A program made the translations under genes and the position numbers. The notes under the pieces were generated by a model. That model saw only the letters and a program-made list of their open reading frames with translations. It did not search any database and had not been told where the DNA came from. Below, in pieces: positions 1,610 to 13,423 of a DNA stretch of 13,514 nt. Source of the stretch: Azolla caroliniana (taxonomy: Eukaryota > Plantae > Polypodiophyta). The stretch covers positions 1 through 13,514 of the forward strand of contig JBHGNT010000945.1 in NCBI GenBank assembly GCA_043228905.1, given 5' to 3'. How positions within the stretch are numbered: the stretch's first letter is position 1; every line of letters starts with the position of its first letter.

Positions 1610-1981
1610 GTCTGCGTCGAGGTCGGACAACGTTGGTGAGGGCTGTGTATGAGGAAGCTCTGTGTGAGGAAGCTTTGTGTGTGTGCGTCTGTCCTCCTTG
1701 GTTTGCGAAAGAAGAAGGTCTCGATGTGGGGGGCGTTTTCTCTCTACATCTTGGCGCCTTTTTCGAGCCTACGCATGTGCAAGTCGTGTACTATAATAGC
1801 ATTACGTGCCATGTGGCGGTGGTTTAATGCCCTTTTCATAGCCTCCTCGTACCTTTTCGAAGTGCCTCTTTACTCCTCATTTGCATGGCCGTTCCCACCA
1901 CTCCTTTGCATGATTTCTTTGATTCGTTTCGATTTTTTTTTAAATTTAATTTAATTTAATTTTTAATATTTGATTATTAGG

Positions 1982-3499
1982 TTAATTCGCCTCCGGTCCT
2001 ACCGGACCCTTACCCGAATGAGGAATCTTGCCGGCCTCGTGACGGTTTGCCGTCCTCTTATCCAACCCGTGTGCCGACTCTTTGTCCCCCTTACCTGCTT
2101 CGTTGTTGCCGATTGCTAATCGAGTTGCCGTTGTTTCCGGTATTTCGGTATCTGGTTCGGCATCAACCTTTCCTTGTTCAAATGGGTTCCTCGGCATGGG
2201 TCCCTTGTATGGCTTTAGTCGAAATTCGTTGACCCACTTACCCAAGACTTCGCCGGCAAGTGTCCCTAACTGGTAGGATCCATTGAACTCGCGTGTGATC
2301 CAGTACGGTCCGGTCCACCGAAACCATAGTTTCCCCGGCATCTTTCCCATCCGGGTCTGGAACACTAGTACCGGCTTGCCGATTCCAAACATCTTTTCAT
2401 TTCCTTTCCGGTGGCGATCCACAAACGCCTTTCTTCGCCGCTGCTCCAATTCTAGGTGCATGATACTTGCTAATCGGTGTTCTTCTAGTTCACACAGAGC
2501 CGCTAACCGAATTGCCTCCGATTCCTTTTCGTTTAACCGTTCCCTAATCTGAATCCGTAAGCTCGGGACCTAGAACTCTACCGGCATCACGGCCTCCAAC
2601 CCGAATGCTAGCCGGAAAGGTGTGGTTTGGATGCTTGTTTTGTAGGCTGTCCGGTAAGCTCAGAGTGCGCTATGCAACTTTGTATCCCAGTTTGTCTGGT
2701 TTTCATTGACGATTTTCCAAAGGATATTCTGGAGCGTTTTGTTTGTCGACTTGGCTAACCCGTTTGCTTGCGGATAGTATGGCGTGCTCCGTTTATGCAC
2801 CACGGCATAGAACGACGTCAAGCTTTCCACCACTTGGCCGAGGAAGTGCCCTCCTTGGTCACTTATTAGCTCGATCGGGCATCCATACCCGCACCAGATG
2901 TATTCATACAAGAATTTCGCCGTCGACGCCGCGGTGTTGTCATGCAAGGGTTTGGCTTCTACCCATTTCGTGCAGTAATCCGTTGCGACAATTACATAAC
3001 GGTTTCCAGTTCTCATCGACGGTGGTTTGAATGGACCCACAAAATCCAGCCCCCATTTCTAAAATGGTTCTAGCGGCAGTACTGTCTGGTGCAACATCCT
3101 AGCTTGTTCGGTTGGCTGGCCCATTCGCTAACATAGATCGCATTCTTTAGCATACCGGACGACGTCTTTCAATGTTGTCGGCCACCATAGGCCACTCTGC
3201 CATATCTTCCTTGCCATAGCATCTCCGACGTAATGGCCTCCGACGACTCCGCAGTGTGCTTCTCGTAGTATTATATCCTTCTCGTAGCTGTGCACCGCCC
3301 GTCGCCATATACCGTCTGCGCCTTTGTGGTATAGCATGTCCCGTAATAAACAGAAGTGCCGGCTTTGTACCGCCAGGCGTTTCCTCTCGTCCCGGTTCAT
3401 CTCATCCAGAGGCAATCCGGTGCTCAGAAATTGTTGCATATTCGTTAGCCATTTATCTTCTTGTGCCACTGTTTCATTTGTTGTCGTTTCCGTGGTGAC
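1982..3499 (-). pseudogene. pol: Integrase region of pol (HHCC zinc-binding, rve core, GPY/F C-terminus), inactivated
   Basis: HCGVVGGH...CDLC, WGLDFVGP, ISDQGGHF, YYPQANGLAKSTN (catalytic E position reads K) and FRWTGPYWI. ORF fragments 3128-3469, 2660-3040 and 1982-2461 share one frame and are separated by point stops. Confidence 0.93.
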
Positions 3500-5191
3500 T
3501 CAAAATAGCTCAGCATCCGGAAACTTGTCCGGGACTCCGTCACCAGTCTCGCCGGAATCCAACCGGCTCAAATAGTCTACTACTGCGTGTTGTATGCCGG
3601 GTCGGTGGAATATTTCGAACTCAAATTCCTGCAACAATAACGTCCACCGTGCCAACTTCCTGGTTAGTGACGCTTTGGAAACTAAATAGAGGAGTGCCGA
3701 ATGATCTACGTGGAAGGAAAATTTCCTTCCCAGCAAATAATGTCTGAATTTCATCACGCTGTATATCATGCCCAAAGCTTCCCTTTCCGTGGTGGAATAA
3801 TTTCGTTCGGCTTGGGATAACTTTTGGCTTGCGTAATACACGGGCTGGTACCACCTTGGTTCCGTAAGTTGCATCAGCGCACTTCCGATTGCAATGTCGG
3901 ACGCATCCACAAACACATGAAACTCCTTAGCCCAATCCGGGGGTTGCACTACCGGCGCTTGCGACAATAGTACTTTGAGTGCCCAGTACGCCTTGTCTTC
4001 GGTGTCTGTCCACTGGAACGGTGTTTTGTGTACCGCAATATGCAGTGGTGTAGCTAGGTCCGCCCGATACCGGAGCATTCGACTATGCCACCGGATTTGG
4101 CCTAAGAAACGGCTTAATGCTTTGGTCGTTGTTGGTGCCGGTGCCTCCAAGATTGCTTTTACTTTGTCTGGGTCTACGAAAATTCCTTCCTTGCTCACAA
4201 TGTGTCCTAATAGCACCCCGCTTGACACTCTGAATACACACTTTGCCGGATTCAATCTTAGCCGGTAAGCCCGACATTTCTCTAGACACAGTCGGAGGTG
4301 CTGAAAGTGATCTCCGTCCCAGCTATAGACGGCGAAGTCATCCAGAAACACCTGCATAAATGCCAGTATAAATTCTCTGAATATTTCCATGATGATCCTC
4401 TGGAACGTTGCCGGCGCCGTTTTTAGTCCGAACATCATTACTACGGCCAGAAACACTCCCCATTCGGTGACGAAAGCCGTTTTCTCCTGGTCATCGGGGT
4501 GCATCCGTATCTGGTTGTATCCGCTGAATCCGTCTAAGAAACTGTATACCTCATGGCCGGTGACTGCATCCAAAACTCCATCCGTAAATGGGAGTGGGAA
4601 TGCATCTGTTACCGTCGCCGCATTAAGCTTACGGTAGTCGACACAAACTCTAATTTTGCCGTTTTTCTTTGGTACGACTACTATCGGGCTCAGCCATGTA
4701 GATTTCGTTACTAGGCGGATAAAGCCAACCCTCAGCAACTTGTCGATTTCCTCCTTGACTTTGGCGGTGTAATTTGGATTCATCCGGTACCGCCGTTGTG
4801 CTACCGGTTTGGCGTCTTTGCTCAAATGTATCTGATGCTGATATAGCTGAGGATCGAGCCCTTGCATATCCTCGTAAGATTAGGCAAACACGTCCCGAAA
4901 TTCCTTGAGAAGTGTAATCATCGCCGTTTTGTTCTCCGGAGTCATTTCCTTGGCGATGTGCACCGGTCTCGCGTCTTCCGTAGTTCCTAAATTTACCTCC
5001 TCTAGTTGGGATGCTTTAACCTGTTGCGATACGGTCATTTCTCTTTCCAGCGCCTCTTGTGCTTGCCGTAGCTCCCGGATCACTTCTTTATTTGGTTCCT
5101 CGTCAGCTCCGTCCGGTGGCAGTATGTATGGTGATACGGCTTCGGCTACGTCGATTTCGAACAGAGGTACGATCTTCAGATTATCCTGCAA
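3500..5191 (-). pseudogene. pol: Reverse transcriptase and RNase H region of pol
   Basis: RVCVDYRKLN, FLDGFSGYNQI, MFGLKTAPATFQR and VFLDD (RT). VDASDIAIG, NYSTTEREAL, VDHSAL and DYLSR (RNase H). In-frame stop at 4880 in DVFA*SYEDM, where W is expected. Confidence 0.96.
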
Positions 5192-5899: not shown

Positions 5900-6796
5900 G
5901 TTTCGCGCATTCGCCTTTTCTATGCATTCTGTTGCCTGCTTGCGGATGGCCTCTTGCGCCTCCCATTCCGTCGCCTTACCCTTCGATCTTGTGGTTACCT
6001 ACTACAGGTCTGCGGCTTCGACGACTACCATGTTCACCGCCGGTCGTTTATCCTAGTTCATTGCCGAGCATTGATTACTATAATGTCCTTCTTGTCGGCA
6101 ATAGTAACAATATGTTTTCCGGGTAGTGCTGGATTCGGCGTTGTTTCCTGCCCCCGGTGGAGGACCTGTGGTAACGGTGGGGCTTTGATCCAGTTGGTTG
6201 CTTGAGGCGCCCTTCTCCGGTTCCCGTAGGTAACCCCTTTTCTTGAAATGGCGTTTCTTTTTGTTCCGATACTCTTGACGGGGTTGGTCATCATGTCTCC
6301 CGTAGGCTTCCCGTCGTTGGTTGTGACCGGGGGATTGGTCCTGATTGTATCTTTCATACCATCCATTATAATCCCGGTACCGATCATATCTCTCATATCG
6401 GTCATAGTTGTCCCTGTACCAGACATCCTGTGCCGGTCGGTACCGCTCTTCTCACCTCCAACGTTCTTCTTCCTCCTCCTTGGTACTCCGTGGTTCGATT
6501 TGCCGAACCGGTGGTGCTTGGCGATTCAACAAATTGTACTCGCACTGCTCCATTGTGTGGTTCCTGGAATGGCACAGTAGACATTGCGACCACATGGTAC
6601 ATTCTAGTGCTGAGTGTTCGGCATTTAGGCATGTTGTGCATTGAATGGCCTGTCAAAACCAGAGATCCTCATCGGTTGGTAACGCTCGTTGGAGTGCTCC
6701 CATTGTTAGCCAAGAGCTTGTTTTCTCCATTTCTCTAACCCGGTTGATGACCTGGTCGACGGTACTTGTGCGAAAGTCGATGACCGTGCATACCGT
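5900..6796 (-). pseudogene. gag: Host gag, 3' part, with three CCHC zinc knuckles (frame absent from the ORF track because of stops)
   Basis: Manual translation gives CTTCLNAEHSALEC (6599-6640), CLLCHSRNHTMEQC (6542-6583), CYYCRQEGHYSNQC (6068-6109), then VTTRSK. All are in frame with pol. Confidence 0.9.
6793..6796. repeat. Left target-site duplication CCGT
   Basis: CCGT immediately precedes TGTCGT at 6797 and recurs at 10310-10313. Confidence 0.9.
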
Positions 6797-7525
6797 TGTC
6801 GTGCCTTTCGGCTCCGGATCGTTTGCGTGAGTCGGGTGGGAACCACTGGGGTTTTGGACTAGGAAGAGGAGAGTTTTAAGGCTAATAAGAATATAAATAT
6901 GTTGTAAGAAAGAGTTATAGCAAACTCGTGAATCCCACGAGTGTATTGTATTAGATTAATCAATATGAATATAAGAATATAAACTTCGGTTGAAAGAGAA
7001 TGATATAGAATTCTCGTGAATCCCACGAGTATAGTTTATTAATTGGTGTTTTTTAGAAACATATCTAGTTTCCAAATATTTTTCACACACAATTACATTG
7101 TGCTCCCCATCCTTATGTAGTGATGAGGAAGTCTTAGTAATCCATGCTTTTTCTCTAACTATAGACCCCATGCTTTTCCTATAGATAGACTATATGCTTT
7201 ATCTAAAGTGATCATGCTTTTTTCTAACTTGTGCATTTTTTATCATGCACGCTAGATGTGTATGTGTAGCTTTTTCTTTTGTTATGCGTTTTTCTAATGT
7301 TTATCCTAGCGTGAATTTACCTTTCTATGTGGGACATCTATGCTTTAACACTAATGAAATGCTAGTGTAATGGTAAGACATTACATTATTAACATGGAGG
7401 TGCAAGGTTCGAATCTTGCCCTATGCATGTTCCATTTATTTTGCTATATTCTTCTATTTCTTCATTTTTTATTGAATCTAATACTATATACGTTTTTCAC
7501 GTAGTGTACAAAATACACTACGACA
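6797..7525 (-). repeat. 3' LTR of the nested element (729 bp)
   Basis: Direct repeat of 9581-10309 (offset 2784). Mismatches seen at 7235, 7312, 7327 and 7448. 6-bp terminal inverted repeat. Preceded by the PPT on the minus strand. Confidence 0.96.
7356..7428 (+). other. tRNA-derived sequence with Pol III A-box/B-box inside the 3' LTR (antisense to the element)
   Basis: A-box TAGTGTAATGG (7363-7373) and B-box GGTTCGAATC (7406-7415) at tRNA spacing. Partial D, anticodon and T arms, but no acceptor stem. Confidence 0.72.
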
Positions 7526-7537
7526 CTCACCCCCTCC
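7526..7537 (-). promoter_or_regulatory. Polypurine tract of the nested element
   Basis: Minus strand GGAGGGGGTGAG directly abuts the TG start of the 3' LTR. Confidence 0.9.
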
Positions 7538-9542
7538 AAACCCGCACATCCTCCGGTATGTGCCGAAGTTGTTGGTGTTTGTTAGTCTCCTCCGTCCGGT
7601 CTCTACCCGATTGGTTTCGTTGCCGGCTCGTAGTACCCTCGACTTCTCTTGTTATGTTGACTTTGTCTCTCCATTTGGAGCACATCCATTCTTTCCACCC
7701 GAACCATTGTCGACATCCGATCCACCATAGTCTTCGTTCGCTTTTTGCATGGCCCGCTTGGTCCTTGTCATCCGCGGTAGTATCTTTTCTTGCCCTCTTT
7801 CTTTTCTTCATCAATCTCGACTTCTTTTCGGATTTTCGGTTTAGTCGGATTAGCTTACTTCCGATTCGGTCTCGTCGGATCGTCTTTCGTTTAGTTCGGC
7901 TTCCTTTCCGATTTGTATTCGGTCGATCCGGACTCGGTTGATCGGTTTTTACCGATTCAGTGCTCTTTCGGGTCGGTTTCTTTTCTTTTCTTTTCGTCCG
8001 GATTTGCTTTCTTTTCTTCGTTTTCACCTGCCTTGTCCGGTTCGACTTTCGGCCCTTCTTTCCGTTGTTCGCTACGTAGGTCCTCCGATATGTGCTCGTT
8101 GTTCGGTCCTCGTGTGGTTGTAATGCATGCTTCTTTTCTCGCCGTAGCGCGTGCTTCTTTATTCGCCATAACACGCGTTTCTTTATTCGCCGTAGAGCGT
8201 GCTCTGTATTATGCGCTTCTCCCGTCGTAGACCCGACCTCCGCATTGTCGCACTTTCTTTTAGATTGGAATTTCGTCCGGATCACCTTCCATCCTAACTG
8301 GCTTCCGACTTTACCTTTCTTGCCGCCATCTCCCGACTCTCCGGTCTCAAGTTGGTTCTCGGACACAACCGCCGAAGTCTCTAGATATTGTTGGCATGAA
8401 TCCTCGGTATTACCTTCTTTCGTAGTTTCACCCTTAGCATTCTTCTCGGCTATCTCTTCATCGTATTCGTCGGCTTCGACATTCGTTTTCTCTCCGCCAC
8501 CTTCCGTCTCTTCGGTCTCACGTTGCCTTTCGATCGCAACCGCCGGAGTCTCTGGAATCAGTGGTGGGGAAGTCTCGATATGGCAATCCGCCATTGATTC
8601 GTCCATAGCCACCTCCGATTCGATTTCGTCTTTTGTGGCTACCTCCTTAATCACATCCGCTTCACACTCTTTATCTGCATCAATTATGCAAACATCTATT
8701 ATGCTTACCCCTTTTTGACCCGATGTCTCGGGCACTTGTATCCCGAAATTTCCTTCTACACTTGAATTATCGGCCTTATCCTTCGCCATCGTTCTTTCAC
8801 AAGACGAGTGGGTGTCTTGTTCCACTCTTTCTCCCGTGGTACCATCATGTTGTATTTCGGCCTTCATATTGGCTTCATCGTTTTTCCTCAATCGACCATC
8901 CTTCATGGGCCATGTCGTTGTTGACGAGATTCTCAGCTTCCTTTCATCATGTCTTCGGCATACCCTTTCGACTTTGGCCCAATCCTCGGTAAGGCCGTTC
9001 GCACCGTCATCATCTTCGAGTTCGATCCCAATGTCCATCCTTTCTTTCCGATCGATCGATCTTACGAACATTAAGACTTTATCTTCTCCCACCAATCTTC
9101 GTTCCCGCTCCGAGAGTCGAGCAAAACGATGCTCGAACTTTAGGAACGCTTGCGTTGCACTTCGGTGAGTCTTCTCCGATGCCACCCATTCGTCGAATTC
9201 TCGTCGATCTCGTCCCGTCCATCTCTCATAGTCATATGCCTCCCGTAAAGCTTCTTCAAAGGACTCCCATGTCGAGTTTTGTTGTTGTATCTTGTGGATT
9301 CTCTCTTGTAGTTCGTCCGAGGCCACCCGGTTAAAGGATGTCACTCGCAGTCCTTCCGAAGCCCGGCACCGGAGCATCTCCGCCTTGTAGTCCTGCAAAT
9401 ATCGCGACACATCCTTACCATTAAATTGCCCGTTGCGTTGCACGAGCCGCTCTACTGATGCCGAAATCTCCGACATCGTGCGTTGTTCTTGAAGCATCCG
9501 TTCGAACATCGCCATCATATTGTTAGCTTGTTGAGCCTCCAT
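7527..9542 (-). CDS. gag: Gag-like protein (~671 aa from the first ATG): capsid-like N-terminus, acidic disordered middle, Lys/Arg-rich tail
   Basis: Uninterrupted ORF (the track starts it at GTG 9563, inside the PBS; first ATG at 9542). N-terminal FNGKDVSRYL...TWESFEEALREAY...F.KFEHRF pattern resembles LTR-element Gag. It lies directly after the PBS. No CCHC knuckle seen. Confidence 0.8.
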   Translation of the reverse strand: MEAQQANNMMAMFERMLQEQRTMSEISASVERLVQRNGQFNGKDVSRYLQDYKAEMLRCRASEGLRVTSFNRVASDELQERIHKIQQQNSTWESFEEALREAYDYERWTGRDRREFDEWVASEKTHRSATQAFLKFEHRFARLSERERRLVGEDKVLMFVRSIDRKERMDIGIELEDDDGANGLTEDWAKVERVCRRHDERKLRISSTTTWPMKDGRLRKNDEANMKAEIQHDGTTGERVEQDTHSSCERTMAKDKADNSSVEGNFGIQVPETSGQKGVSIIDVCIIDADKECEADVIKEVATKDEIESEVAMDESMADCHIETSPPLIPETPAVAIERQRETEETEGGGEKTNVEADEYDEEIAEKNAKGETTKEGNTEDSCQQYLETSAVVSENQLETGESGDGGKKGKVGSQLGWKVIRTKFQSKRKCDNAEVGSTTGEAHNTEHALRRIKKRVLWRIKKHALRREKKHALQPHEDRTTSTYRRTYVANNGKKGRKSNRTRQVKTKKRKQIRTKRKEKKPTRKSTESVKTDQPSPDRPNTNRKGSRTKRKTIRRDRIGSKLIRLNRKSEKKSRLMKKRKRARKDTTADDKDQAGHAKSERRLWWIGCRQWFGWKEWMCSKWRDKVNITREVEGTTSRQRNQSGRDRTEETNKHQQLRHIPEDVRVWRG
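8125..8203. repeat. 24-bp in-frame tandem repeat (~3.3 copies) within the gag-like ORF
   Basis: Units gcatgcttcttttctcgccgtagc / gcgtgcttctttattcgccataac / acgcgtttctttattcgccgtaga encode HALRRIKK-like octapeptides. Confidence 0.85.
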
Positions 9543-9558
9543 CTCCTTGCCACCCGTC

Positions 9559-9576
9559 TTCACGTCGGGTTCACCA
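9559..9576 (-). promoter_or_regulatory. Primer-binding site complementary to the tRNA-Trp 3' end
   Basis: The plus strand reads TTCACGTCGGGTTCACCA, matching the 3' 18 nt of plant cytosolic tRNA-Trp(CCA) as I recall it. It lies 4 nt from the 5' LTR. Confidence 0.88.
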
Positions 9577-9580
9577 ACGT

Positions 9581-10309
9581 TGTCGTGCCTTTCGGCTCCG
9601 GATCGTTTGCGTGAGTCGGGTGGGAACCACTGGGGTTTTGGACTAGGAAGAGGAGAGTTTTAAGGCTAATAAGAATATAAATATGTTGTAAGAAAGAGTT
9701 ATAGCAAACTCGTGAATCCCACGAGTGTATTGTATTAGATTAATCAATATGAATATAAGAATATAAACTTCGGTTGAAAGAGAATGATATAGAATTCTCG
9801 TGAATCCCACGAGTATAGTTTATTAATTGGTGTTTTTTAGAAACATATCTAGTTTCCAAATATTTTTCACACACAATTACATTGTGCTCCCCATCCTTAT
9901 GTAGTGATGAGGAAGTCTTAGTAATCCATGCTTTTTCTCTAACTATAGACCCCATGCTTTTCCTATAGATAGACTATATGCTTTATCTAAAGTGATCATG
10001 CTTTTTTCTAACTTGTGCGTTTTTTATCATGCACGCTAGATGTGTATGTGTAGCTTTTTCTTTTGTTATGCGTTTTTCTAATGTTTATCCTAGCGCGAAT
10101 TTACCTTTCTCTGTGGGACATCTATGCTTTAACACTAATGAAATGCTAGTGTAATGGTAAGACATTACATTATTAACATGGAGGTGCAAGGTTCGAATCT
10201 TGCCCTATGCATGTTCCATTTATTTTGCTATTTTCTTCTATTTCTTCATTTTTTATTGAATCTAATACTATATACGTTTTTCACGTAGTGTACAAAATAC
10301 ACTACGACA
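9581..10309 (-). repeat. 5' LTR of the nested element (729 bp)
   Basis: Near-identical to 6797-7525, with TGTCGT...ACGACA termini, followed by the PBS on the minus strand. Confidence 0.96.
10140..10212 (+). other. tRNA-derived A-box/B-box cassette inside the 5' LTR
   Basis: Identical copy of 7356-7428. A-box 10147-10157, B-box 10190-10199. Confidence 0.72.
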
Positions 10310-10313
10310 CCGT
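10310..10313. repeat. Right target-site duplication CCGT
   Basis: Follows ACGACA at 10309. Removing the element plus one CCGT restores the host gag frame. Confidence 0.9.
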
Positions 10314-11348
10314 TCGTAGAGGTTCCCAGAGCACGGCTAAGAATATAGCCCATGTTTCTTCCTCCGGAGGTGTTCGGGTAAGCTGACTGTGCATCCGTTG
10401 AAATCCGATGACAAACTGCGGAATGCTCTCCCTAGGGTCCTGCCGGATGGTATAAAATAGGCCCACCATTTCTCTCTGGTCCACCTCCTTCTGAAAGAAG
10501 TGCAAGAATTTATCTTTCAGGTCCGCAAAGGTGGTGATGGTGCTGGGGTCCTGCGTCCAGTGCCATCTGGCGGCCGGTCCTTCCAATGTCACACCAAATT
10601 TGGCTATCTTAGATCGTTTCTCTTCGGTTGTGGTTAACTGTTGTGACACATCGTTCGCCTCCCATGTTTGTTGAAAAGCGTGAACATGAGCCTCCGCGTC
10701 CGGGTCATCCCTATACTTGGGGTACTGGAACGGCATGTCGTCGTCCGGTGTCGGTACGCGAGCTGGCGGTGTCAGTGGTCTTTCTTACTGTTCCGTCGGC
10801 GTCAGAGGTCATTGCTGGTCCTCTGTTGGAGTTGGAGGTCTTTGCCGGTCTTCCTTCAGTGTTGCCGGCTCGACTTCCGGTGTCGGAGGTCTTTCTTTGT
10901 CTTCTTCTGTCTCCGGAGGTTTCTCCACGTCTAGTGCCGGAGGTTCCCGGTCTGACAATTCTGGTTCCAATGTCGGTAATGTATCCGACTCCTTGTCCTC
11001 CGGTCCTCCTGGGGTGTCGTTACTGCTGCGATAGTTCGTGTGCGCGTTGTAACCCCCTTCTGAATCCGATTCCAGCGCTGAAAATGCTTTGGATTCGCCG
11101 TCTCTTCCGGCCAAGGCCTGGAGAAGGGATTCCACTTCCCGGAGACTGCTTAAGCTGCTTCCTTCGTCTGGGTAGGCGTTTTTTTGCAGACTGAGCGACT
11201 CCTCCGCCACTTTCCGGATCACTTTGGAAAATGATCGATCCGATCGGATTTCTTTGGAAAATGATTGATCCGAAAGCCTCTCGCCGCCTTCACCGTTCAC
11301 AAATCTTCGTGCTCTCTCCGTAACCGGGTCGTCTGTTGGCCTAGTCAT
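10310..11348 (-). pseudogene. gag: Host gag, 5' part (acidic/Pro-rich leader plus retrotransposon gag capsid domain)
   Basis: ORFs 10809-11348 and 10302-10736 are in one frame. Motifs YPKYRDDPDAEAHV, TLEGPAARW, TFADLKDKFLHFF and IRQDPRESIPQFV (Q-x3-E-S major homology region-like). Confidence 0.88.
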
Positions 11349-11403: not shown

Positions 11404-11824
11404 TGTTAATCCTTAGGGCCGGACAACAGCCTAACACAGGGTGTCCACTTAAGACACTTCACCAAAGGGTGTTACAGTGAGATAACTTACGACACAACGC
11501 TTAATTGGACCTTAATCGGTTACTTAGCAATACATCATTAACACGCGTAAGATATACAATAAGCACAGAACGGTGAACAATACTCAATGATTAAACAAAA
11601 GGTTTATATTACTCTCCGTTCATGACTACATTATAACCGGGCCTTTATATAGGTCACCGGTGCGAAGTACAAAACGGTGCCAACCGACACCTTTTCAGGA
11701 TCGGTCCGGATCCGGATCGGCATACCGATCCCGATCCGTCCGTCCACATCTTCTCATATATTAATATATTAAGATTAGTAATTACAACAGATGCCTCCTT
11801 AGCTTCTTTGCCGGCCGGGTAACA
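11404..11824 (-). repeat. Putative 5' LTR of the host element (~420 bp; left edge 11402 or 11404)
   Basis: TGTTA...TAACA inverted termini, adjacent PBS, internal TATA box, and an abrupt switch to minisatellite at 11825. The partner LTR is not in the window. Confidence 0.7.
11644..11651 (-). promoter_or_regulatory. TATA box of the host LTR
   Basis: Minus strand CCTATATAAAGG in the middle of the LTR, oriented toward gag. Confidence 0.65.
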
Positions 11825-12470
11825 AGAATACGATCATAGCTAACTAGCTAATGGAAATAGCTAACTAGCTACTGGTAATAGGTAATTAGCTACTCTTAAT
11901 AGGTAATAAGCTACTCTTAATAGCTAATCAGCTACTCTTAATAGCTAATTAGCTACTGGCAATAACTAAGTAGCTATTATCAACTAATTAACTACAACCT
12001 TTGCTAATTAACATCAAACTATGAGCATAGCTAACTAGCTACTAGTAATAGCTAATTAGCTATTATCAACGAATTAGCTACCACAAACGCTAATTAGCTA
12101 CATCAGAATATGATTTAGCTAACTAGCTACTAGATATAGCCAACAAGCGTGGTAAAAGTTAATTAGATATTGGTAATAGGTAATTAGCTACTCTTAATAA
12201 CTAATTAGCTACTGGTAATAACTAATTAGCTACTCTGATCATAGCTAATTAGCTACCACACTATATCTAACTAGTTATTGGTAATAGCTAATTAGCTACT
12301 CTTAATAGCTAATTAGCTACTTGTAATAGCTCATTAGCTACATCAAAATAGCTAATTAGCTACATGAGAGTATGATCATAGTTAATTAGCTACATCAAAA
12401 TAGCGAATTAGCTACACGAGAGTATGATCATAGCTAATTAGATACCACACTATATCTAATTAGCTACATC
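11825..12470. repeat. Minisatellite of ~21-bp units built on the 14-bp palindrome TAGCTAATTAGCTA (roughly 29 copies)
   Basis: Recurrent TAGCTAA(T/C)TAGCTA cores separated by short linkers such as CTCTTAA, CTGGTAA and CATCAAAA. Confidence 0.95.
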
Positions 12471-12529
12471 AGGTAGCATCAGAGTAATCACTGAACTCCC
12501 TTCATTACATAGGTAGATTTATTTATTAG

Positions 12530-13423
12530 GTTTAAGCGAATGCATCCAAATATCAAAGTTCAACTACGAACATTCGAGTATCTTAAACCACACTTTGTGA
12601 GATGCTTAAAAGATCGATACACATGTTGTTGCATTTACCATGTACAAATGACTTTTTTCAAGGACTCTGTTAATCTACTACGTCACCATAGCTCCTCCCT
12701 ACAGGATGCAATTTGCACTTGTGAGTGCCCAATTTGTCGATGTAGCCCGCAAGAGCACTGTAAATCATCAAAGCATGTTATCTCTTCCATGCATGGTCTT
12801 TTATATTCAGGATTGGGTCTACGAGAATCTTAGGCTATCTTCCACAGTTATAAATGTGTCATGGGTTTATGTCAAAATTGGAGCTATTGTTTAAACAAAA
12901 CATATATTCAGAATTGGGAGTACCATACATTGAATGATAAGGAAGCGGTGGATGGAGAAATAGAAAACAATGCTGACTTCACATATCAGGGCCGTGGAGA
13001 TACTCTACATGATGTCATAAACGTTGGGGATAATTTCATTGTAAATGCAGAAGAAGGCAATTCAAAGGGTGTTGATTTCTATATATTGAAGTGCATGGTT
13101 TGTAAACAATGCACAACACAGAATATTGTAGATGCTTGGGGAAACTTGTGGCATCTTGTACCCAAAACAAACGCGCTACTGAACTGCACTACATCCCTAT
13201 ATTCATCGTGATTCTATCTGTTGGGACATTGTATATCAAATGTATTTTTTATGCAAGACTAGATGATTACGATTATATGTATAGGCTTTTAGAAGACAAA
13301 CCAGTAGTGTACATGTACTCTCATTTGGTCAGGTGCATCGTCCCGATGTCCCAATACAATAGTTGCTCAGATTTATACACAGTTAGTGCTAATGTGCATG
13401 AATCTATTTACAACAACAGTTAG
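12530..13423 (+). pseudogene. Degenerate Cys-rich DNA-transposase-like gene fragment (tentatively Sola2-like), catalytic core apparently missing
   Basis: FKRMHPNIKV..RTFEYLKPHFV..DRYTCCCIYH. ORFs 12540-12833 and 12861-13211 are in one frame across a TAG. The frame changes near 13150-13210. Candidate splice acceptor TTATTAG/G at 12529/12530. Confidence 0.45.

Follow-up and report, generated by a model that had tools for sequence, protein, structure and literature searches.

An antisense tRNA-like cassette conserved in the putative U3 region of a Ty3/gypsy retrotransposon lineage

Introduction

What role, if any, does a sequence bearing the promoter boxes of a tRNA gene have when it lies antisense within the long terminal repeats (LTRs) of a protein-coding retrotransposon? 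The question is raised by a 13,514-nt stretch of Azolla caroliniana DNA (GCA_043228905.1, contig JBHGNT010000945.1; hereafter the window), in which an initial annotation described a tRNA-derived Pol III cassette built into both LTRs of one element. LTR sequences derived from tRNA or 5S rRNA are otherwise known only from very small, non-coding TRIMs, in which they are taken to act as the element's own Pol III promoter. Helenus (TRIMp3; Kojima 2024) comprises non-coding TRIMs of 311-1263 bp with 5-bp duplications of the target site in plants and fungi, a site for primer binding (PBS) plus a polypurine tract (PPT), and with a tRNA-derived part in the LTR whose conserved portions are mainly boxes A and B (PMC10886601). 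This tRNA-like part has been proposed as a Pol III promoter, and it is argued that autonomous partners should not share it, although "not a few" LTRs in Repbase also contain tRNA-like parts (PMC10886601). Cassandra TRIMs, likewise short and non-coding, contain LTR sequence derived from 5S rRNA and are reportedly transcribed from a Pol III promoter (PMC10886601).

Results

A gag-only Ty3/gypsy element hosts the cassette

The cassette resides in a 3.5-kb (3512 bp), gag-only element of Ty3/gypsy type on the minus strand, with LTRs that are 99.5% identical (Table 1). Direct repeats at 6794-7526 and 9578-10310, recognized in an identity map at an offset of 2784, differ at four positions (7235, 7312, 7327 and 7448), and trimming of these repeats to TG..CA defines the LTR bounds. 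The 18-nt PBS matches what we take to be the 3′ end of plant tRNA-Trp. A single open reading frame (ORF) fills the entire internal region from PBS to PPT. Pfam returned no match for this 678-aa ORF, its relatives were recovered with scores of 2e-127 to 1e-36, and the clusters nearest to it in the ESM Atlas are Retrotrans_gag; the C-terminal two thirds of the protein are of low complexity and rich in E and K/R. The assignment to Ty3/gypsy is supported by the LTR pair, the target-site duplication, the PBS, the PPT and gag, together with the gypsy order of the pol domains in an autonomous relative, L001. That the host codes for Gag, as had been stated at the outset, is thus borne out, in contrast to the short non-coding Helenus and Cassandra TRIMs (PMC10886601).

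The element is inserted in the gag of another Ty3/gypsy element, represented in the window by an RT/RNase H ORF at 3500-4867 and a gag ORF ending at 10302. Two contigs of run X2 (Logan) join position 6791 to position 10309 and so display an empty site, which confirms the element boundaries; other contigs show other copies. The empty site reflects either host gypsy copies without the insertion or an insertion that is polymorphic.

Several further sequence features accompany these structures. The LTRs contain a conserved palindrome, CATGCAC..GTGCATG, at ~7243-7275, in place of which group-B relatives have a longer TGCACAAAACCATGG hairpin. Both LTRs also contain four AAAGCAT(G/A) repeats within 7140-7280, and a hairpin, CTCGTGGGATTCACGAG, occurs twice in their R/U5 part (6926-6942 and 7011-7027). 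Elsewhere in the window, 11810-12480 is a long array of 21-nt tandem repeats with partly palindromic, ATAGCTAATTAGCTACT-like units, which yields weak, false miRNA-precursor matches in Rfam. A separate tRNA-like sequence on the minus strand at 13137-13198 (Rfam, 18.6 bits) has acceptor, D and anticodon arms (loop UUUGGGU) and no T arm; it resembles, presumably, plastid tRNA-Pro(UGG) and may be an organelle-derived or pseudogene fragment.

Table 1. Coordinates of the element, its cassette and related modules (positions in the window unless an LTR or another locus is named)
Feature	Position	Strand	Remarks
Target-site duplication CCGTT	6793-6797 and 10310-10314	.	5 bp; read directly
3′ LTR	6798-7525	-	728 nt, TG..CA; terminal inverted repeat TGTCGT/ACGACA; offset-2784 map, ends read directly
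5′ LTR	9582-10309	-	Same gag-only element; offset-2784 map
PPT GGAGGGGGTGAG (minus-strand reading)	7526-7545	-	Abuts 3′ LTR; same tract precedes the LTR of L020
Gag-like ORF	7527-9563	-	678 aa; single
PBS	9559-9576	-	18 nt; 5 nt from 5′ LTR; plus strand is a tRNA 3′ end terminating in CCA
Conserved block AACACT.., just upstream of A box	7331-7362	+	Alignment of relatives
A box TAGTGTAATGG, copy 1 (3′ LTR)	7363-7373	+	Read directly; 3′ half and D-loop (7369-7378) form a conservation peak
B box, copy 1: GGTTCGAATC	7406-7415	+	Within hairpin 7401-7418; conservation peak 7395-7412
B box, copy 1: GGTTCGAATCT	7406-7416	+	As above
T-runs, potential Pol III stops	T4 7439-7442; T6 7465-7470; T5 7493-7497	+	Read directly
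Cassette copy 2 (5′ LTR)	10147-10200 (A box 10147-10157; B box 10190-10200)	+	Identical core
Parts aligning between families	LTR start; nt ~96-179 (cassette); nt ~250-283 (palindrome); nt 480-728 (R/U5)		BLAST
L020/L023 tRNAiMet-like module	L020:1800-1885; L023:~2870-2950	+	U3; in place of the antisense cassette
L038 initiator tRNA-Met gene copies	L038:744-815 (44.1 bits); 1046-1117 (56.5 bits)	-	Rfam; no CCA; T4 trailer

The cassette displays tRNA-type promoter boxes in antisense orientation

The antisense orientation reported for the cassette is evident from the anatomy of the element: the cassette is on the plus strand, whereas the minus strand holds the PBS, the PPT and the gag-like ORF. 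Read in the direction of the element, the cassette occupies LTR nt 56-170, well upstream of an AATAAA at ~nt 490 and of candidate TATA motifs, and these relative positions suggest distal U3, in keeping with the U3 placement that the initial annotation had proposed. Its core (7356-7447) is identical in the two LTRs, as the four mismatches between them all fall elsewhere; the sole mismatch across the full span of 7356-7470 is that at 7448, in the T-rich tail.

Within the cassette, the window carries the sequence pattern of a type-2 Pol III promoter, defined here as an A box (TRGYNNA..GG) and a B box (GGTTCRANNCC) ~30-60 nt apart on one strand, with matches at 7363 (TAGTGTAATGG) and 7406 (GGTTCGAATCT), and the pattern is kept in most relatives. 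The two boxes are indeed at tRNA spacing, with 43 nt between position 8 and position 52 where a canonical tRNA has 44, and the 10-nt core of the B box is exact in this young copy. The T6 run noted downstream is present and is joined by a T4 and a T5 run; a T4 run recurs at a similar distance in most group-A relatives, in a U3 that is itself AT-rich. A TATA-like run is found in the block upstream of the A box in some relatives and is missing from the window copy.

The arms described for the cassette fared unevenly. The GCAAG/CTTGC hairpin of the T arm is present, with a loop of 8 nt (or a 6-bp stem with a 6-nt loop) where the canonical loop has 7, and there is no acceptor stem, just as had been observed. 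In the window copy, the D arm takes the form of a 10-bp hairpin.

Membership of the tRNA family was examined with a covariance model, as the initial annotation had suggested. ARAGORN reported nothing, and the Rfam tRNA model RF00005 scored 13.4 bits against a gathering threshold of 29, so the cassette is not a tRNA gene. This score belongs to a local match spanning model positions 8-63 (E=3) obtained when 161 nt were searched alone, and the match is not listed when Rfam is run on the whole window. Possible resemblances to tRNA-His, Asp, Trp or organellar Gly are not claimed here. Of dinucleotide-shuffled versions of the window, 6.7% contain a relaxed pattern of A box, spacing and B box, and because of this frequency and the low Rfam score the window by itself is only weakly significant. 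The case thus rests on conservation in relatives.

Relatives of the element form one lineage that carries the cassette

Relatives were gathered with the N-terminal domain of gag, which as a query retrieved 14 proteins, the alignment of which led to 80 metagenome contigs; more were added through exact-protein look-ups. These contigs are metagenome assemblies of plant material, many of them probably containing dead copies and some circularly permuted by assembly, and LTR starts can be placed in a minority of them. Nearly every contig that extends to the 5′ end has the same PBS, and the relatives thus form one lineage.

A hidden Markov model of the cassette, seeded on three copies, a mode of detection that favors conserved ones, located it in 19 gag-anchored contigs and in three of four fetched later, or 22 further contigs altogether. 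In every one of these, the cassette is on the strand opposite to gag and lies in LTR context. One of the bearers, L001, is autonomous, with gag followed by a 1155-aa pol that contains RVT_1, RT_RNaseH, Integrase_H2C2 and rve. In a Gag tree, both of the main ingroup clades contain elements with the cassette, and the cassette was not found in an outgroup of 31% identity. Across ~300 kb of gag-anchored contigs, it never occurs outside an LTR. Among loci with a defined LTR start, the cassette is absent from L020/L023 only; the other loci scored as lacking it are mostly unreliable, their LTR starts being unplaced. Matches to GGTTCAAGAC on the sense strand near the PBS of some relatives proved to be a U5 motif and are not tRNA-like.

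The presence of the cassette in an autonomous gag+pol relative and across the whole lineage makes a recent, passive capture of a SINE head, which had been raised as the alternative, unlikely.

The gag-only layout of the window element is likewise recurrent, consisting of an LTR, the PBS, one ORF of ~530-690 aa that runs to the PPT, and a second LTR, with the autonomous relative L001/L012 alongside. In many relatives (L003, L022, L033, L086 and L087), the 3′ LTR directly follows gag. Shared by several divergent relatives, the gag-only layout represents a type of family that recurs and not a one-off deletion. Certain contigs have more complex arrangements: L022 and L020/L023 read from an internal 3′ end through an LTR and PBS into the gag of a second unit, and L021 has two PBSs 175 nt apart. 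These are either tandem elements with a common LTR or the product of circular permutation by the assembler. The outgroup element of L078 has full U1 (1806-1970, plus strand, 129.9 bits) and U2 (2767-2973, minus strand, 147.6 bits) snRNA genes 2-3 kb upstream.

Primary sequence is conserved and the cloverleaf is not

A BLAST search with the whole LTR of the window, a query with no bias to the cassette, aligned only four parts of the LTR across families, and the cassette is one of them (Table 1). Box conservation was also compared with the flanks across copies, as the initial annotation had suggested. Between three sequence groups, the core is 61% identical, versus 31-37% in the 100-nt flanks. 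Among 18 non-redundant copies, two conservation peaks lie in and beside the boxes, one at 7369-7378 (the D-loop together with the A box in its 3′ half) and one at 7395-7412 (the variable loop, the 5′ strand of the T-stem and the first half of the B box), and scores are lower in the region of the anticodon arm and in the flanks. The 5′ half of the A box varies among relatives, some of which have better A boxes than the window (TAGCATAGTGG / TAGCATAATGG), and the strongly conserved part also takes in GAGGTGCA, 5′ of the B box, for which Pol III promoter function has no obvious need. Several copies have changes of C56 to T, of the CpG type, in the B box, and one copy has its B box deleted; copies with an altered or deleted B box may be dead.

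These peaks are not accompanied by conserved RNA structure. In 17 relatives, 50.7% of cloverleaf cells are paired, compared with 51.7% in shuffles and similar values in slid controls. Pairing amounts to 36-49% in the acceptor, D and anticodon helices; the T helix, at 80%, has no excess of covariation over controls. Nine relatives were searched with Rfam and gave no tRNA match, none reaching ~18 bits. As neither the cloverleaf nor the T arm gives a signal above that of controls, a conserved tRNA-like or other RNA structure can be dismissed. The window copy does adopt a stable two-hairpin fold (z ~ -4.3) that is not common to its relatives. Folding z-scores for the two strands are equal for practical purposes (-1.84 versus -1.97), so the strand of function cannot be called from them. 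Unconserved stems combined with peaks of primary-sequence conservation would be anticipated for a promoter or a binding site and not for a structured RNA.

Other tRNA-type modules occur at or near U3

The family that lacks the antisense cassette has a different tRNA-like sequence in its LTR. In this sister family, L020/L023, the same PPT together with the terminal motif establishes the LTR start. Here LTR nt ~125-200, roughly the U3 position that the cassette has in the other elements, hold a sense-oriented relic that resembles tRNAiMet, from which it differs mostly by transitions, and that is directly followed by T-runs. Several GCGTTTTTT(T) repeats come after this module. Rfam gave no match for the decayed module of L020.

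A third type of arrangement is found in L038, in which two near-intact, antisense copies of an initiator tRNA-Met gene reside in tandem units of 302 nt that are bracketed by LTR copies; one LTR end immediately precedes them, and the next LTR, PBS and gag follow. These gene copies may belong to the LTR or to a TRIM-like internal region, or they may be host tRNA genes with an insertion on either side. Together, the modules of L020/L023 and L038 indicate that tRNA-derived pieces recur near or in the U3 of this lineage. Given that the L020 module is decayed and has no Rfam match, such recurrence could reflect a mechanism of capture instead of selection.

Discussion

The cassette is probably a piece of a tRNA gene that has been kept by selection throughout this lineage. 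As to what it is kept for, we tentatively favor, with a confidence that falls short of calling it probable, a role as a selected TFIIIC/Pol III DNA site in distal U3, with or without a short antisense RNA. An old relic of a tRNA gene, or of a tRNA-derived repeat, would have become a heritable part of the LTR in one Ty3/gypsy lineage. Its tRNA fold has decayed, and primary sequence has been retained in the D-loop with the adjoining 3′ half of the A box and in the segment that covers variable loop, T-stem and B box, at tRNA spacing and in outward orientation. At the DNA level, this sequence in distal U3 may be bound by TFIIIC and the Pol III machinery, and the cassette could thereby serve the LTR as an accessory module in regulation or chromatin. 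Transcription from it may also yield an antisense RNA of ~80-115 nt whose end lies at the T-runs, short of the LTR edge. We infer such binding, transcription and benefit to the element from sequence patterns.

Several lines of evidence argue for a TFIIIC/Pol III site. The same core is present in both LTRs and in the further contigs, that of the autonomous element included; an LTR-wide search picks out the cassette, whose core is so much better conserved than its flanks and peaks at the boxes; and both Gag ingroup clades possess it, tRNA-type modules recur, and the B-box core of a young copy is exact. On the other side are the weak score against the tRNA model and the frequency of the A+B pattern in shuffles, the conservation of GAGGTGCA, the variable 5′ half of the A box and the copies in which the B box is altered or gone, as well as the decay of the L020 module and the preference of the HMM for conserved copies. 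A Pol III complex so near a Pol II promoter can also repress.

A different and, in our judgment, unlikely explanation is that the cassette is an ordinary upstream regulatory module for Pol II that binds other factors, being tRNA-like by descent with its Pol III boxes out of use. Such a module would suit the distal U3 position amid repeated AAAGCATG and CATGCA-type motifs, as well as conservation that exceeds the canonical boxes to include GAGGTGCA and the upstream AACACT block, and enhancer blocks are commonly the sole conserved parts of U3. However, both peaks lie in or beside the positions of the A and B boxes at tRNA spacing, which would not be expected of a random factor site, other tRNA-derived modules occupy the same place in sister families, and no known plant cis-element was recognized in the conserved core.

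Selection need not be invoked at all if a tRNA or SINE piece in the ancestral LTR has persisted by descent, its apparent conservation being a product of common ancestry, recent bursts and the mode of detection. The many decayed copies with their CpG-type B-box changes and single deletion, the decayed L020 module, the lack of an RNA-structure signal and an HMM that prefers conserved copies would all accord with a neutral relic. Even so, we consider it improbable, because the flanks are now too divergent to be aligned, whereas the core remains 61% identical between groups in which Gag N-terminal domains are ~50-60% identical to that of the window, because an unbiased search with the whole LTR singles out the cassette, and because the boxes are intact in the youngest copy.

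A further possibility is that the cassette works in the genomic RNA as the second part of a Ty3-like PBS, in which U3 would pair with a host tRNA at its D and T arms, so that the tRNA would bridge the 5′ and 3′ ends at the initiation of reverse transcription. In yeast Ty3, the T arm and D arm of the primer tRNA pair with sequences in U3 (PMC5371799, citing Gabus et al. 1998). Like Ty3, the element in the window is of the Ty3/gypsy type, and the sequence in question is in U3, has the same polarity, such that the sense RNA is complementary to a tRNA, and is conserved in its D-loop and T-arm parts. It differs in that the T-stem of the primer inferred from the PBS (RCGUG/CACGU) is at odds with the GCAAG/CTTGC of the cassette and in that the existing PBS already measures a full 18 nt. 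With the primer tRNA known from its PBS part only, no specific complementarity extends beyond the universal T-loop GUUCGA, and the L020/L023 family does without the cassette. Covariation between PBS and cassette is uninformative here because the PBS is invariant in the lineage. A bipartite PBS seems highly improbable. Chance resemblance with no tRNA descent at all, for which the low Rfam score, the silence of ARAGORN and the frequency of the relaxed pattern in shuffles might speak, is barely credible in view of the better A boxes in relatives, the D-loop AATGGTA, AGGT variable loop, T hairpin and spacing that are all consistent with a tRNA, and a local alignment that spans positions 8-63 of the Rfam model.

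Several known systems come close to this arrangement. Heads of tRNA-derived SINEs and TFIIIC-only sites have A and B boxes at tRNA spacing, a decayed cloverleaf and downstream T-runs. The cassette resembles them in keeping boxes and spacing, in the loss of the cloverleaf and in the T-runs that follow, but has no LINE-type tail or target-site duplication of its own, is confined to LTRs in the 300 kb examined, and is inherited with the LTR. With Helenus, the window element shares tRNA-derived sequence inside the LTRs, boxes A and B as the best-kept parts, a 5-bp target-site duplication, a PBS and a PPT. The window element is nonetheless larger and coding (3512 bp with a 678-aa ORF), its cassette is antisense, whereas use as a promoter in Helenus implies the sense orientation, and an autonomous relative shares the cassette. 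Cassandra provides a similar parallel, as a plant LTR element both of whose LTRs hold the relic of an internal promoter of Pol III type, although the relic there is of the 5S type and not of the tRNA type, and Cassandra is short and non-coding. In the literature searched, no description was found of an outward-facing tRNA relic in coding or autonomous LTR elements, Helenus and Cassandra being nearest.

A broader proposal, and one about which we are doubtful, is that a lineage of autonomous and gag-only elements not only keeps but repeatedly re-acquires TFIIIC/Pol III sites from tRNA genes as a selected U3 module. Its effect might be to keep the chromatin of the LTR open, to insulate the LTR, or to link the element with the Pol III machinery or with the neighborhoods of tRNA genes; the tRNAiMet copies beside the LTR of L038 hint at a link of the last kind.

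In this lineage, the relic faces outward from coding and autonomous elements that must themselves be transcribed by Pol II, and it is the best-conserved part of their U3. If its boxes bind TFIIIC, the cassette would represent a retrotransposon-borne chromatin or boundary module in plants and a new source of dispersed Pol III sites, as well as of false tRNA and SINE calls in annotation. If they do not, a tRNA relic would here plainly have been put to new use as a regulatory block for Pol II.
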